64,000 bases of DNA, taken from Monocercomonoides exilis PA203 (taxonomy: Eukaryota; Protista; Preaxostyla). The position numbers and the translations under genes are program-made. Below the pieces are notes generated by a model. The model did not search any database. It was not told where the DNA came from and worked only from the letters and a program-made list of their open reading frames with translations. Shown one piece after another: positions 23,893 through 30,860 of the stretch (position 1 is its first letter; each line of letters opens with the position of its first letter). The stretch is taken from assembly GCA_001643675.2 (NCBI GenBank), contig LSRY02000041.1, forward strand, positions 682,001 through 746,000, in the 5' to 3' direction.

Positions 23893-26800
23893 CTAAGAGC
23901 TGGCCTTTTCAAGGCACTCTTTTGCTAATTCTTCGCATTGTGTTAGGCACTCACGACTTCCCTGGTAATCTCTGTCACACATCGTAGCGCATCTTCGTCT
24001 TCCATCCACGCAATCAGAAATCGTGACTGGTTTATCTTGTTTATTGACATTTTTATTTTCAACATTTGAATCTCTGCCTGTAGATTTATCGTCTTTTCTT
24101 TGCTTTTTCATTGCCTTTTTCTTCATATTTGCATATTTTTGTGAAAGCGGCTGCGTTGTTCTGTTAGTCTTGATCGATTCCTTTATTTTCGAAGGCAATT
24201 TGCTTTTAATCTCTTCAGAATCTTTGTCAAGCTTCTTCAAGAAGTAATCAACAAGATGTGAAGATTTGTGTGATTCTTCTTCATTTGAGTGCTCAAATCC
24301 CTTTTGATCGAAATCCCACGAACCAACCAATGCATCGAGTTCGTCATTCTTCTCATTCATTTTTCTCAAATACTCATCTACAATATTCTTCGGATGTTCT
24401 GTCGGTTCTTTTTCCCCTCTCTGCATCTTTTGCTTTCCTTGCATTTTATCATTTATTGCTCTGTTTATGCGTTGCCTCACCATATCAGCTGGCCCTCTCT
24501 CTTGATAGCGCTGGTTCTGCCTCTGATCAAACTGACTGTTGCTTCCAAATCCCTTTTGGTTATCAACCATCTTCTTTAGCTGTTTGCCAACTTTCTCTTT
24601 TCTGCTCTTAATTGCATCTTCCATTCTTTCTCTTCTTGATTTCATTCTCTTTTTCATTTCCTTTTCTTCCTTTTCTTCTTCTTCTTCTTCTTCTTCTTCT
24701 TCTTCTTTCTCTTTCTCTTCTTCGTCTTTGTCTTCTTCGTCTTCCTTCCCTTCTTTTTCTATTTCGCAAGCTCTCCACTCCTCATCGCAGCCAAGATTGC
24801 ACTGCTTCCCTGCAATTCTGCAGTCCTGATACGCTTCTTCCTCTCCCTTCCCGCCTTTCATCTGCCTCTGCACACATCGCTGTGTAAAGCGCCGGCATTC
24901 AGAATAGCACTGCCTGCGCTGCATCTCACATTCTGGTGCAGACGATGGAGGAACCTGAGAATTCGCTTGACTCTCTCCTTCTCCTGTTTGCTTCTGGCTG
25001 CCCATCTTTCGCATTCTCCTCTTCATGATTTTCTTTTCCTTTCTTTTTTGCATCTTCTCCTGCTTTTCTCTTCGCTCTTCTTCTTCTTCTTTCTCCTCCT
25101 CGTCGCGTTCGACTGAATGAATGCACCGCTCAAATTCTGCGTCGCATCTTTTCACTTCTCTCTGAACCTCTTTCGAGCATTCCTCTTTCGTCCTCCCTCT
25201 TTCAAGGCAGCTGTTTCCGAAGTCAACACAATTTGACAAGCAGTCCACTTTCTGCGATTCGCACATCATCTCTCCGTCTGACTCACTCAGCACACTGTTG
25301 TTCGTCAGCATGCTTTTCATCCCGCGTCTGTCAAAGTTCAATCCGCCAGACATTCCACTAGAAACATCGTAGCGCAGTTGCTTTTGTGTGCCTTTCTTGT
25401 TGATTGAATTAACTGGACTAACAGAATTGTCAAAGGAATCTCTGTGCTCATAGCGGCTGTGCTTTCTCATCTGCTTCAGCTCAGTTTCTGTGGAAGGCTT
25501 AGCAGAAACCATCGCTTCGTCAAATAAATCGGCCAGTTGGTACATCCTTCTATCTGTTCGCGTGTGCTTGTCTTCTTCAGACGCAGCTTTCATCAGCTTC
25601 TGCTTTGTATTGTCCAAAAGCTGCTTCTTCTTCTCTTCTGCCACGTCAATCACGTCTGCCACCATCACTTCTCTCTGTCTGTGGCACCTGTCTTCGCATG
25701 TTGCTGAGTCCCGCTCACATTCCTGAACACATGTCACCAGCGGCTCTTCCCCAAAGCTCCGCAAAAGCGTCTTCCGCACATTCGTTCCGAGTCTTTCTCC
25801 ACGCTCTTTCGCTTTGCTCTTCGCTTTGTCCTTCAAATTGCTATCCCCTTTCTCTGACTTGCCTGTCTTTTTGGCTGTCTTTGCCTTGTCCAGCTCAGCA
25901 GCCAGCGCAACATGATCCAGTTCCTTTCCGAAGTCGAAGTCGCGCGAGCGCCATTCCTGTGCCAGTGTGCTCATCTTCATCCCTCTTTTGCTCCATCCCT
26001 TGGAATCGCTGCTGCTGTCGTGGCAGTCGTCAATGCACTGTGTCTCGTATTGGCTGCACTCATCAGCACATTCTTCGAACGTGCGGTTGATTTGGCTGAG
26101 CGCTCTCTGCAGCTGCCGTTCGTGTCTGTGTAAGGCATGTACTGATGACAATGCAATGTCCTTCACACAGCCACGAGGATATGGAGATGATGGAGGCACT
26201 TTTCTTTCTGAGGCAAAATGAGGAGATGATTTGGATGACGGGCTGATCTCAACAAACTCTGAATTCAGTGTGTCTGTCTTTTGTCTGTTTGCCCTGCGAT
26301 TTTTGAATTTGTTCAAAGATCGGTTAAGTCTCTCAGTTATATCTTCTTCCTCTTCTTCTTCTTCAATTTCTTCTTCGCCTTTTTCTTCCTCTTCTTTTTT
26401 CTCTTCTTCTTCCTCTTCCTTTTCCTTCTCTTCATCTTTCGCAATCTGTTTCGCTGTCACACTCACTTTCATAAACGATGCCTGCGCCTTCCCCACACTT
26501 ATTCTGCACTTCAGCATGCACTGCTCGTTCTTCGCATCACACTCTGCCAGCTTCCCTTCCAAACATTGATTCAGCTCCTGCGGCGCGATTGCTGCACTGA
26601 GCTGGTTGTATCGGATGCTTCCGGGGGCTGCTTTGCGCCGCGCATCTAGATCCTGCTGGCTCAGCTCCATCATACACCCAAGCTCTGCATTCACTCGGCA
26701 CCGCGCGCTTTCGTCCTTGCAGGTGCTGTTGCAGTCGCTGCTGCTGCTGGCAGAAACGGGATTCGCTTCATCTGCGCTGTTTGCAAGGTTAACAGAAACA

Positions 26801-29544
26801 GACGGTTCGCTGAATTCATCAGCAACGAACGAGGACAGAGGATGGCTCCGCTTATTGGATTGAGATGAGTGTAAATCAGAAAAAGAAGAAGAAGAAGATT
26901 CTGAGTCTGGCTTGTAATTCACTGAACGACTCGAACGAGAAGAAGAAGCTGTTGCTGATTGATCATTTGAAGATGAAAGGGCAGAAGATGCATCACTTCC
27001 TTCGACATCTGTCTGCTGCATGCCGCTGGAAAAGCGATCAGCAAGAGGATATCTTCTGCTCATAAACGCATCCAATGGGCGCTCAGACACATCGATTTTC
27101 TGTCCTTTAACCTGATAGCGCGGGCTGTGATAGTCATCTGAGAATTGCCTGCTGCGCTGTTCGTCTCTTTCCTCTCCAAATCCGCCGGCAGAATTTGCCA
27201 TGCTCACGTTGCTGTGCACACCTGCCCTGTTTGGATATCTCTCGTCGTATCTTCTTTTCGCGTCCACTCTTCTGCCATCTGTCACTTTCTTGTCTGGCCC
27301 GTTCTTTCCGTCCGCTTCGCTTCCGCTGCCGTTTCTTCGCTTCTCTTCTTTGAGCATCTTGTTCACTCTCTTTCTAATGTTATCCTTCCGCTCTTTCGTT
27401 CTGTCGTTCTCGCTCTTCGCATTCAGCCCGCTCTGCTTCATCTTCTGCTCTGCTCTTCTGTTCGACTCTGTCACATTCGGAGGCGCATTAAACGTCTGCA
27501 CACACAGCGACACACACTCGCTCGCCTCTTCTGCACACTGCGGCATGTTGTGCTCGATGCAGGTGATAAGACAATCAGACTCATCCACGTCGTACTGTGC
27601 AGCGTCTTGTTTAGAGGTTGAATCAGCACTTTCTCCGTCGCTTGTTTGTGTCTGCTTCATTTTCCGCTGAGCACACTCAGATCGGCAGTAATCCCTCATC
27701 TGCGTAGAGCAGCTGTTGAGTGTGTCGTTGCAAGACGCAACACAATCATTCTTGTCAGCAGCATACTTTGCAATGCCTCGCTTTTTCAGGTCATCGCGAA
27801 GCATCAGCCGCTCCTGCTCCTCTTGTTTTGTCTGGTTCTCTGTCTTGTTCCCAACAACAGCTTGTTCGCACTCGTTGTGACACGTAGCCATCAGAGCCCC
27901 GCACGAATCAGTCTTCTCTGCCATGCAGCGCCCCAGGCATGTCCGCTTTTTGTTCGGCTGGACGTGACGATTGTGCTGTTTGTATTTGTTGACAAGCTGA
28001 TGTCGCTTAACTTTGTGTGCTCTTTGTGTTTCTTGGGACGAGAAACCTTCTTTCGATTTCTTTTTATCATCTTCGTCATCATCATCATCGTCATCTTCTT
28101 CTTCATCATCGTCATCGTCATCGTCATCGTCATCGCCATCCCTCTTTCCTTCCTCCTCCTCACACTGTGCATAGCAATCCATCGCAGCTGTGTGCAAACA
28201 TTGCTTTGTGTTTTCCATGCATTGCCTGTCGCACATCTTTACTGCTTCTGAGTCCGTCACGTCCGCATCGCACTCCTTCAGGCAGTCTTCCTGCAAGCTG
28301 CTGCATTCCGCCTCGCATTGCTTAAGACAGTTGTCGCACTCGGCAGTTTGGGATGCGTCTGCTCCGTCTGTCTTTGTTCCGTTGCCAAAGCACACCGGGT
28401 CGCATCTCCCATCGCAGTTGTCAATACACTGATTAACCGCTGACAATCGCAAAAATGTGTCATATTTCATTTTCAAAAAGAGAAAGAGAGAAAATGGTTG
28501 AATATTTTTTTTAAAAAAAATGCAATTTTTCTCAATGGTAAACACATAAAGCACACTTTCTCTACACGTGAGATCACAATCAACATCCACTTGATCTGTA
28601 AGAAGCAAAGACTGCGAAGAGATAGACTGCATCGGAGAAAAAAGCGATAATCCGAGCGCCTTAACAACAGCATTCTTCATTGCTTCGTGAGATGGATGGT
28701 TGCACTTCAAAGGGCATGCTTCAATGCAACCTGAATATGGTTCGATGCAGTCTTTAATGGACGCGAGAACACAACGACGTTCGCATTGGGATAACTTGTT
28801 ATTGTAATCTTCTTTTTCTGTATCTGTTATATTCCCATTTAAAAGAGAAGAAAGCTGATTTGTGCATTCTGTATGGCAAAATGTCACTGCTTTTCCTTCG
28901 CAAGAATCAAGTTTTTGCTTGCATCCAAATGAGCATTCCGAAGAAAATCCTCGTTTTGTTTGATCCTTCAAAATACATTGGCCATAACTGTTACTGCAAT
29001 TTAGCAAAACATCTTTGACGCAAGATGAAATGTCGCATGAGCCATCTGTAAAAATGAGAATTTCAAAAAAAAATGTGAATACGTTGCACAATTCAATATG
29101 AAAATTATTAAACTTTGACATTTCTCCGTGCATGTAACTGTTGAGTTCTGTTGGCATTCACTTAGAACGTTCACACAACTTATTTGAGTACCAAAGTTGC
29201 AAAGATCCTTGCATTCAAGGAGATTAACCCCACAAATTTCAATTTCTTGATTTTTAATAAATGTAATCTTGTGCATAAAAAAATTTTGTAATACCTTCCA
29301 TTGTACATTGCTTTTGACATTCAGCAGGATCTTTTGAAAAATTGCATTCTTTTCCGCACAGAACATTTGCATTTGAAATACACTTCATTGTACGATTAGT
29401 ACAAAGAAGATTGCATTTTTCTTGGTCGTTAGAGTTTAAAAAAATAGGTGAAAGCTGCCGTAATGTTCGATTATGATTGGATGGGAGAGAAAATGGAACG
29501 GCATATGAGATTGATATAAACGACCAAATGCACAAAAAAAGCAT
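23893..29544 (-). CDS. Secreted cysteine-ladder repeat protein; exons 29544-29295, 29245-29114, 29045-28557, 28439-23893
   Basis: Signal peptide MLFLCIWSFISISYA. Three GT-AG introns; removing them restores regular Cys spacing. Repeated C-x3-C-x6-C-x7-C-x3-C / C-x3-C-x7-C-x6-C-x3-C units are separated by charged linkers. No TM segment seen. Confidence 0.85.
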
Positions 29545-29691: not shown

Positions 29692-30860
29692 ATGGAACTG
29701 TTATTGATTGCATTCACAATTGCCTTTATTTACGGGGAGAGCGAAAAGGGAGAAACAAATAGTGCTTTTTCAGATATATTTTACTGGAAAAGCAAGGCTA
29801 TTTGGAAAGCTTCTTCTGTTCCAAATCCAAGATCAAATCCGAACAAATGTGTTTCAGCAATGGATTTGAACGAATACATGAAACTTTTCAATTGCACTGG
29901 AAAGCTTCCTCCGTTATGGATATGTGATCCTGATGGTTTTGTTTCTCCATCCGTTCTGAAAGAGGTTAATGAAAAAATTAGTGAATTGGAATCAACAAAC
30001 GGAGCAGAGGTGGGAGTGATTGTTGTAGAGGTATGAGTCAAACAAATTATCATTTTAAATTTTGAAATTATTTATTTTATATATTTTTTTAAATGAAAAT
30101 TACGAAAATTTTTTTAGTCAAGAGATTCAAGCGAATCATCAAGCGACTTTACAAAGAATGTTTTTAATTCTTGGGGTGTTGGAAAAGCAAATGTGAATAA
30201 TGGAGCGTTGTTTTCACTTATGTTTGATCTTTTGTTTTCATATGTAATGACAATATTTGTTTCCTTTTTTTTAAATAAATGTGTTTGCTGTTTATTTTTG
30301 AATGGATCTCTTTATCATGCAATGCCACAAAGGATAAATGACCGTGAGATGTACATTCAAACAGGAAAAGGAATTAAGGATTTGTTTTCGGGATCAAGAA
30401 TTGATGAAATCTTGAGTGCTTTGAAACCAAGTCTTCGAGATGGAAATTACGATGCAGTTTGAGAGCTGTTGCTTAGCTTCTATTTGTTATATGATTTTTC
30501 TGTTCTTTGTTATTCTATCTGATTGTTTGTATTTATGAAATTATGTATGGATTTCAGGCTGTCAAGACAGCTGTGGATAAAATTTGTAAAGTCATCAAGG
30601 ATAATAAAAAGCCATTTCCAGAATGGGCGCTCGTAGTAGTTATTGTAGTTCCTATTCTTGCTGTTGTTTTGGTACCAGTCATAATTACTGTTATCTGCTC
30701 GGCAACGGGACATTGCAAGTCTACTGGAGATGGAAGCTCTGGAAGCACCTACATAAATTCTACGACTGATAATTCATATTCTTCAACTTCTTTTGATAGC
30801 AGTTCTTCATTCGGTGGTGGTTGTTGTGATGGTGGGGGAGGAGGTGGTGGAAGTTGGTAA
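29692..30860 (+). CDS. TPM (TLP18.3/Psb32/MOLO-1, YgcG-like) domain single-pass membrane protein; exons 29692-30030, 30118-30221, 30333-30456, 30558-30860
   Basis: Signal peptide; VPNPR..C..WICDPDG; VFNSWGVGKANVNNGALFSLMINDREMYIQTGKG; LKPSLRDGNYDAAV; TM WALVVVIVVPILAVVLVPVII; terminal FGGG..GGGGGGGSW. Three phase-consistent GT-AG introns. Confidence 0.85.

Follow-up and report, generated by a model that had tools for sequence, protein, structure and literature searches.

Mirror-symmetric cysteine ladders in a predicted secreted protein of Monocercomonoides exilis

To our knowledge, the helical hairpins known to be stapled by disulfides are small peptides with two staples. The small Tims (twin CX3C) and the CHCH proteins (twin CX9C) are oxidised by Mia40/Erv1 in mitochondria. 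Plant alpha-hairpinins (EcAMP1, MiAMP2, Tk-AMP-X, Sm-AMP-X and the vicilin-buried peptides) consist of an antiparallel pair of helices with one CX3C motif opposite another and nested pairing, Cys1-Cys4 and Cys2-Cys3, and their precursors sometimes carry several modules after one signal peptide (PMC7191063). A two-disulfide alpha-hairpin motif is likewise present in the CS-alpha/alpha toxins, including kappa-hefutoxin, the Om-toxins and conotoxins flf14 and vil14 (PMC7191063). Here we describe MONOS_5284, a minus-strand gene of M. exilis PA203, an oxymonad (Metamonada), that occupies positions 23893 to 29544 of the window analysed, a stretch of 64,000 nucleotides (GenBank assembly GCA_001643675.2, contig LSRY02000041.1, positions 682,001 to 746,000). 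Its product contains eleven modules of mirror-placed cysteines, which we propose to be disulfide-zipped helical hairpins.

The MONOS_5284 protein contains 100 cysteines, one of them within the N-terminal hydrophobic segment and 99 after the signal peptide. All but three of the latter (96 of 99) form 48 mirror-placed pairs, here called rungs, which are grouped into modules M1 to M11, each with a half A, a loop and a half B (Table 1). Spacings that span introns were computed by arithmetic across the exons. An earlier note on this DNA had described the cysteine spacing as palindromic within modules, and the whole protein bears this out: 29 mirror-matched gap pairs were observed against 14.75 ± 2.4 after shuffling, and in 2,000 shuffles the gap order never gave as many as 29. 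The same outcome was obtained with three paralogs. Eight of the 11 modules have a gap order that can discriminate mirroring from direct repetition, and all eight are mirrored. The recurring module of the note, with gaps 3,6,7,3 and 3,7,6,3, is present as M1, M3, M5 and M6; its further forms x3-x6-x3, x6-x3-x6 and x6-x3/x3-x6 were recovered as M8, M10 and M11, and the CNSTC module (M7) does lack both innermost cysteines. Two points needed amendment. Strict mirroring holds except that M2 and M4 are one residue off at the innermost step and that three cysteines fall outside the rungs, and of the loop sizes given, 8 to about 100 residues with a poly-Asp run, the upper end (97) and the poly-Asp run in M5 stand, whereas the shortest loop has 4 residues (M2) and not 8.

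These modules are most readily compared with the alpha-hairpinins. The CX3C/CX3C sub-motif appears in M1, M3, M5 and M6 both as the outer (C1,C2/C9,C10) and as the inner (C4,C5/C6,C7) pairs, separated by a central rung; M8 fits too, and an antiparallel helix-loop-helix is also predicted here. The likeness to an extended alpha-hairpinin/CX3C fold that the note had drawn is thus apt, albeit with clear differences. Alpha-hairpinins have two disulfides, whereas the MONOS_5284 modules have 3 to 6 rungs, steps of 6 and 7 residues and a single central rung; their loops are as long as 97 residues, and predicted helices run from one module into the next. Furthermore, alpha-hairpinins are plant peptides of 30-50 residues, whereas MONOS_5284 is a protist protein of 1,805 amino acids that has no sequence kinship to them and no Vicilin_N match. 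The MONOS_5284 modules work like an extended, serial alpha-hairpinin outside that family, set in a giant protein that is acidic and, by prediction, largely disordered.

Nested pairing was probed through the loss of cysteines in five paralogs (MONOS_5284 itself, on the contig labelled C38, and loci on contigs C41, C29, C14 and C7), in which the gap vectors locate each missing cysteine unambiguously. Both cysteines are kept in 168 rungs and both are lost from 15, with a single instance, in M9 of MONOS_5284, of one being lost without the other. The losses fall at rung positions 1, 2, 3, 4 and 5. M3 of C14 and M10 of C29 have no rung 1 on either helix, M1 and M7 of C7 no rung 2, and M9 of C41 no rung 3; rung 3 is also gone from M5 of C14 and of C7, each of which reads 3,14,3 / 8 / 3,14,3 (also in alignment A3, which was built on the public spliced proteins). 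Inner rungs have disappeared from both helices in M2 of C29, C7 and C14, and rung 5 of M7 from both helices in the four paralogs that can be scored, with M7 of C14 retaining one cysteine pair only. Assuming nine independent events, with a chance of 1 in 5, 4 or 6 for each, the second loss would hit the mirror partner throughout with a probability of about 1 in 10^6. This loss of mirror cysteines together matches what nested disulfides (1-10, 2-9, 3-8, 4-7 and 5-6) would predict, as the note had supposed, and speaks against pairing within a helix and against four-cysteine metal sites. Such rung-wise loss across the paralogs makes the disulfide map itself predictable.

Two parts of the protein were modelled with AlphaFold2 (AF2), using residues 12-216 of the EukProt sequence P0001 with an alignment of six sequences (model 1) and residues 205-540 with five (model 2). 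Model 1 has a mean predicted local distance difference test score (pLDDT) of 60, with values of 74-88 over M2 and M3, and contains helices at model residues 2-41, 49-74, 80-111 and 118-153; the first of these runs without a break from M1b into M2a. Model 2 contains helices at 2-31 (M4a), 42-113 (a single helix through M4b and M5a), 177-213 (M5b), 222-282 (M6a) and 297-331 (M6b), with pLDDT of 77-87 over the ladders and about 40-50 over the poly-Asp and other loops. Every half-ladder within this coverage, from M1b to M6b, was predicted to be helical with a pLDDT of about 75-88. When model residues 1-75 were compared with 48,161 chains using VIA-align, the only superpositions, at a Z of 6.4-7.3 that the tool classes as non-specific, were on generic antiparallel helical hairpins such as those of ESCRT-III Snf7, PspA, the ATP-synthase c subunit and Skp; these superpositions confirm the hairpin shape of the predicted model and not any kinship. 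The cysteines of the half-ladders fall on one helical face, with a best period of 3.6-3.8 (R 0.92-0.97) compared to R of 0-0.5 at the beta period, and a period of 3.8 would suggest some right-handed twist or local strain. Together, predicted helices, hairpin superpositions and cysteine period support the antiparallel two-helix hairpins of the earlier note. The ladder segments are 22% cysteine, rich in Glu, Asp and Arg, and have few hydrophobic residues; because they are charged and poor in hydrophobics, the rungs would have to act as the core.

Other described systems resemble these modules in part. Small Tims and CHCH proteins are helix-loop-helix structures in which two nested disulfides join mirror-placed cysteine motifs, although they have two rungs, whereas the modules here have 3-6 that are spaced by 3, 6 and 7 residues, and no PF02953 or PF06747 match was found in MONOS_5284. 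They also reside in the mitochondrial intermembrane space with Mia40/Erv1, whereas MONOS_5284 has by hydropathy a signal peptide of the endoplasmic reticulum (ER) type, and no Erv domain was detected in the genome. M. exilis has no mitochondrion. The CS-alpha/alpha toxins are instead short peptides of animal venoms that carry two rungs, and they are not homologous to MONOS_5284. Giardia VSP and HCMP are very cysteine-rich proteins of the secretory pathway in another anaerobic metamonad, one that is not known to have Ero1. They have CXXC motifs and a transmembrane anchor, whereas MONOS_5284 has CX3C, CX6C and CX7C in predicted helices, a single CX2C (in M4), no membrane segment and no Pfam match. 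Spectrin and alpha-actinin rods offer an analogy only, in that helical units are arranged in series and a helix runs on from one unit to the next; they supply the top Foldseek rows for AF2 model 2, although these are non-significant (E > 3), and spectrin repeats are cytoskeletal three-helix bundles that have hydrophobic cores and no disulfides.

The ladders are also the conserved part of the protein. Between the two closest paralogs they are 57% identical (45% with cysteines left out), compared to 28-29% in loops and linkers. Loops and linkers also differ greatly in length (across the five paralogs the M5 loop measures 74, 76, 44, 8 and 8 residues), and the variability that the note had ascribed to the loops is evident in both respects. 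A signal peptide is predicted at about codons 1-15 (29544-29500), where the 19-residue Kyte-Doolittle hydropathy reaches its maximum of 1.83. By hydropathy this N-terminus is the sole hydrophobic segment; there is no membrane anchor and no tail of the glycosylphosphatidylinositol type. The protein has a net charge of about -48 (201 Glu, 141 Asp, 173 Lys and 121 Arg, counted in P0001) and 16 N-glycosylation sequons. With conserved ladders, diverged loops and linkers, and high charge without an anchor, we therefore read MONOS_5284 as a secreted structural protein, and we infer both its secretion and its disulfides.

We consider it reasonably probable that MONOS_5284 is a soluble secreted protein of eleven antiparallel helical hairpins with nested cysteine ladders and, most speculatively, that its role is extracellular and structural. 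The signal peptide, with no other hydrophobic segment, would make the protein soluble and secreted. Each hairpin would place its mirror cysteines on one face of each of two antiparallel helices, and oxidation in the ER, where enzymes of the protein disulfide isomerase (PDI) type are encoded, would close them into a nested ladder of three to six inter-helix disulfides (1-10, 2-9, 3-8, 4-7, 5-6). Since the ladder segments are charged and hydrophobic-poor, this ladder would replace a hydrophobic core. Adjacent hairpins may share a continuous helix (M1b with M2a, M4b with M5a) and thereby form zigzag rods, and each ladder would be a clasp closing a variable and charged tip loop of 4-97 residues for which disorder is predicted, with long acidic and basic linkers joining the modules. 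Our best guess is that rigid, protease-resistant ladder rods string together hydrated, disordered, charged segments. In the most speculative step, such a protein would serve as a component of a surface coat, a matrix or a cyst-type wall, where the ladders would resist gut proteases and the three cysteines outside the rungs may permit intermolecular links.

If this is correct, a natural hairpin of 5-6 rungs, repeated eleven-fold and fused through shared helices, would be a new structural solution, giving rigid and probably very stable helical rods that lack a hydrophobic core and are relevant to protein design and to loop-display scaffolds. The five genes would form a lineage-restricted secreted family in a gut symbiont about which little is known, and are candidates for surface or wall biology. 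More tentatively, and with a good chance of being wrong, we suggest that this is an undescribed fold class of alpha-helical hairpin rods, chained through shared helices, in which as many as six inter-helix disulfides in succession take over from a hydrophobic core, and that it arose in the Monocercomonoides lineage and is made by an anaerobe without Ero1 or QSOX. Were that so, it would imply a novel oxidative folding route and a new extracellular material in oxymonads.

Several observations weigh against the proposed secreted ladder protein. The pairing rule is violated by the incomplete rung of M9 and by the three cysteines outside rungs. The AF2 models have low predicted template modelling scores (pTM, 0.33-0.41), and their input alignments comprise just 5-6 sequences. 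Neither ERO1 (PF04137) nor Erv/QSOX (PF04777) was detected genome-wide, in a search that was made exon by exon and had no positive control, and M. exilis lives in an anoxic gut. An anaerobe in which Ero1 and QSOX go undetected would have to form roughly 48 disulfides per molecule. The genome does give about 45 thioredoxin-domain matches, including two-domain PDI-like proteins with WCAHC/WCGHC sites (L030:967-2484 and L031:394-1647). Lastly, the gene neighbours give no hint of function, and the head-to-head arrangement with a TPM-domain gene described below is not conserved at the paralog loci.

Three other explanations were considered, of which one concerns processing and two concern the partners of the cysteines. 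MONOS_5284 could be a polyprotein precursor whose basic linkers, and possibly loops as well, are cleaved to release stapled hairpin peptides acting as antimicrobials or protease inhibitors. The layout, a signal peptide followed by many linker-separated cysteine modules, is that of type-2 alpha-hairpinin precursors (PMC7191063), and an R-Y motif, often as KR/RR-Y, is enriched in the linkers (see below). The 60 dibasic sites in the protein might also be counted in its favour, but they are close to the chance level for 17% Lys plus Arg. Modules that share continuous helices would be inseparable units, loops reach 97 residues and linkers 256, far beyond those of peptide precursors, and the surfaces of the ladders are conserved outside the cysteines as well. 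We regard such a precursor as unlikely.

The same cysteines could instead form a metal-thiolate zipper that holds a metal such as Zn or Fe between the helices, which would suit an anaerobe without Ero1. Metal binding was formerly suggested both for small Tims, with their twin CX3C, and for surface proteins of Giardia. CX3C opposite CX3C does make a four-thiolate site, the habitat is reducing, and the genome searches detected neither ERO1 nor Erv/QSOX; however, five-rung modules would leave an odd, isolated central rung, cysteines are gained or lost in twos by rung and not in fours by site, one paralog module has lost rung 2 while keeping rung 1 and would be left with half a site, and PDI-type oxidoreductases are encoded, all of which make a zipper quite improbable. 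Alternatively, half A of one chain could pair in antiparallel fashion with half B of another to give covalent dimers or a network, especially across the loops of 74-97 residues. Mirror spacing is compatible with any antiparallel pairing, long disordered loops cancel the entropic advantage of intramolecular closure, and the three extra cysteines could take part. Against such exchange, the loops of 4-9 residues in M1, M2, M9 and M11 permit hairpins only, those of M5 and M6 have just 8-18 residues in the C14 and C7 paralogs, and AF2 folds the modules within a single predicted chain; we think it very unlikely.

The family appears to be confined to M. exilis. Searches of its own genome (82.3 Mb in 101 contigs) with exon 3, exon 4 and a five-sequence profile each recovered these five loci alone, all of which have a hydrophobic N-terminus, the first half-module, a homologue of exon 1 and the intron-1 position (...EG|gt) in common. 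Four of the five genes correspond to public 'uncharacterized' proteins (MONOS_5284, 3144, 370 and 3857). A HMMER search of 1.84 billion representative proteins with profile A1 gave M. exilis proteins only, plus one chance match, and a word-based protein search returned only two M. exilis proteins. The chance match, P0005 (E 5e-4), is an unrelated repeat protein. As a control, an ABC transporter (membrane domain) encoded in the same window matched numerous Streblomastix strix and Blattamonas nauphoetae proteins, with identities of about 45-55%; another control query, the VID27 ORF (open reading frame), gave no match. Oxymonad proteomes are included in the collection of the word-based search, and the HMMER library was clustered from a similar collection. 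Because other oxymonad proteomes are covered, as the ABC transporter control indicates, the blank outside M. exilis is meaningful at the sensitivity of HMMER.

No described domain was recognised either. Pfam gave no family match in any of the family proteins, with none at E ≤ 1 for families including Vicilin_N, zf-Tim10_DDP and CHCH; weak rows to Ins_beta (E 0.07) and TMEM181_GOLD (E 0.063) were judged to be chance. Profiles A1 and A3 had no meaningful match among PDB sequences, neither AF2 model matched the PDB at E ≤ 0.001 with Foldseek, and the ESM Atlas yielded no usable match by features and, by shape, only unrelated helical proteins at a template modelling score (TM) of 0.35 or less. Literature searches turned up no paper on MONOS_5284, on secreted Monocercomonoides proteins rich in cysteine, on cyst walls in that genus or on helical hairpins with several disulfide rungs. 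The family that the earlier note did not recognise had no match in Pfam, the PDB, Foldseek, VIA-align, the ESM Atlas or the 1.84-billion-protein set beyond M. exilis, and the profile search of proteomes found its paralogs alone and no strong match to a described domain. A genome-wide scan for a C3C6C7C3C DNA pattern (557 matches compared to 40 in the control) was swamped by TGC/TGT repeats and is uninformative about family size. That scan also brought up a long near-perfect TGC/TGT/GGC array (CAG/CAA-type on the other strand) at C1:857581-858231 (-).

The gene model was derived by calling splice sites from the sequence and then checking them. It comprises four exons with a coding sequence of 5,418 nucleotides (1,805 codons), and all three introns are GT-AG and in phase 1. 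The translation of exon 1 is identical to the start of NCBI KAH7818745.1, and the whole exon model is identical throughout to that record (also XP_067722603.1; P0126, 'uncharacterized protein MONOS_5284', 1,805 amino acids), the residue numbering of which is that of P0001 plus 73. Because intron 3 is in frame and has no stops, the raw reading frame 23893-29157 runs through it; the intron is absent from both public proteins, P0001 and P0126. In six-frame ORF lists a single ORF of 1,754 amino acids conceals this intron. A search for contigs encoding KAH7818745.1 or a neighbouring ORF gave no match.

Table 1. Exons, introns, cysteine modules and cysteines outside the rungs of MONOS_5284, in window coordinates. 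Module descriptions give the gaps between cysteines in half A, the loop length, and the gaps in half B.
Feature	Position	Strand	Description
Exon 1	29295..29544	-	Start codon, signal peptide, M1 half A and first CX3C of half B
Intron 1	29246..29294	-	49 nt, GT-AG, phase 1; interrupts M1 half B
Exon 2	29114..29245	-	Remainder of M1 half B; half A of M2
Intron 2	29046..29113	-	68 nt, GT-AG, phase 1; missing from C29 and C14 paralogs
Exon 3	28557..29045	-	M2 half B, M3, first CX3C of M4
Intron 3	28440..28556	-	117 nt, GT-AG, GC 0.22-0.29; stop-free, in frame
Exon 4	23893..28439	-	4,547 nt including stop; rest of M4, M5-M11, long charged linkers
M1	29199..29415	-	3,6,7,3 / loop 8 / 3,7,6,3; 5 rungs; crosses intron 1
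M2	28975..29177	-	6,7,3 / loop 4 / 4,7,6; 4 rungs; crosses intron 2
M3	28714..28935	-	3,6,7,3 / loop 26 / 3,7,6,3; 5 rungs
M4	28270..28578	-	3,6,3,3,3 / loop 17 / 2,3,3,6,3; 6 rungs; crosses intron 3
M5	27868..28233	-	3,6,7,3 / loop 74 / 3,7,6,3; 5 rungs; loop with poly-Asp/Glu run 28140-28066
M6	27502..27744	-	3,6,7,3 / loop 33 / 3,7,6,3; 5 rungs
M7	26506..26733	-	3,6,7 / loop 36 / 7,6,3; 4 rungs, innermost pair missing
M8	25684..26070	-	3,6,3 / loop 97 / 3,6,3; 4 rungs
M9	25123..25263	-	6,3,6 / loop 9 / 10,6; 3 full rungs and 1 partnerless Cys (25230-25228)
M10	24766..24930	-	6,3,6 / loop 17 / 6,3,6; 4 rungs
M11	23914..24012	-	6,3 / loop 9 / 3,6; 3 rungs; stop codon 6 residues on
Cys outside rungs	28704-28702, 26169-26167, 25230-25228	-	P0001 C169, C975, C1288

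Some public models of the family differ in extent. The EukProt model of MONOS_5284 (P0001, 1,732 amino acids) begins inside intron 1 and is without the signal-peptide exon, and that of MONOS_3144 (P0002, 1,756 amino acids) is N-terminally truncated and is without the signal peptide and the first modules. The NCBI models of MONOS_5284 and of MONOS_3144 (P0127, 1,979 amino acids) are complete.

The cysteines outside the rungs are distributed differently among the paralogs. The extra one after M3 (28704-28702, in a CP[LF][KE]C motif) is also present in the C41 paralog. The lone cysteine at 26169-26167, upstream of M8 and about 300 residues upstream of the partnerless cysteine of M9, occurs in the MONOS_5284 paralog only; the two may pair together or make intermolecular links.

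A multi-exon gene with a TPM/MOLO1 domain (29692-30860, +) stands head to head with MONOS_5284, the start codons being 147 bp apart, and its product carries a transmembrane segment and a Gly-rich tail. It was rejected as a functional partner since none of the four paralog loci has such an arrangement. Directly upstream of the C29 paralog, small cysteine-rich ORFs (C29:1024418-1025554; L032:5919-7055, +) have mirror gaps of 10,7,3 / 12 / 3,7 and 7,3 / 5 / 3,7, with no Pfam match and no second copy in the genome, and may represent a small gene in its own right that is structurally of this kind.

Tyrosines in the linkers of MONOS_5284 are mostly preceded by Arg (RY, RYP, KR/RR-Y), for example at about 27320-27100 (-). 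RY occurs eight times in the protein compared to 1.9 expected, a count reached by none of 2,000 shuffles, and seven times in MONOS_3144 compared to 2.6 expected; the two shorter paralogs show no enrichment. The linker RY may act as a short linear motif in processing, cross-linking or binding.

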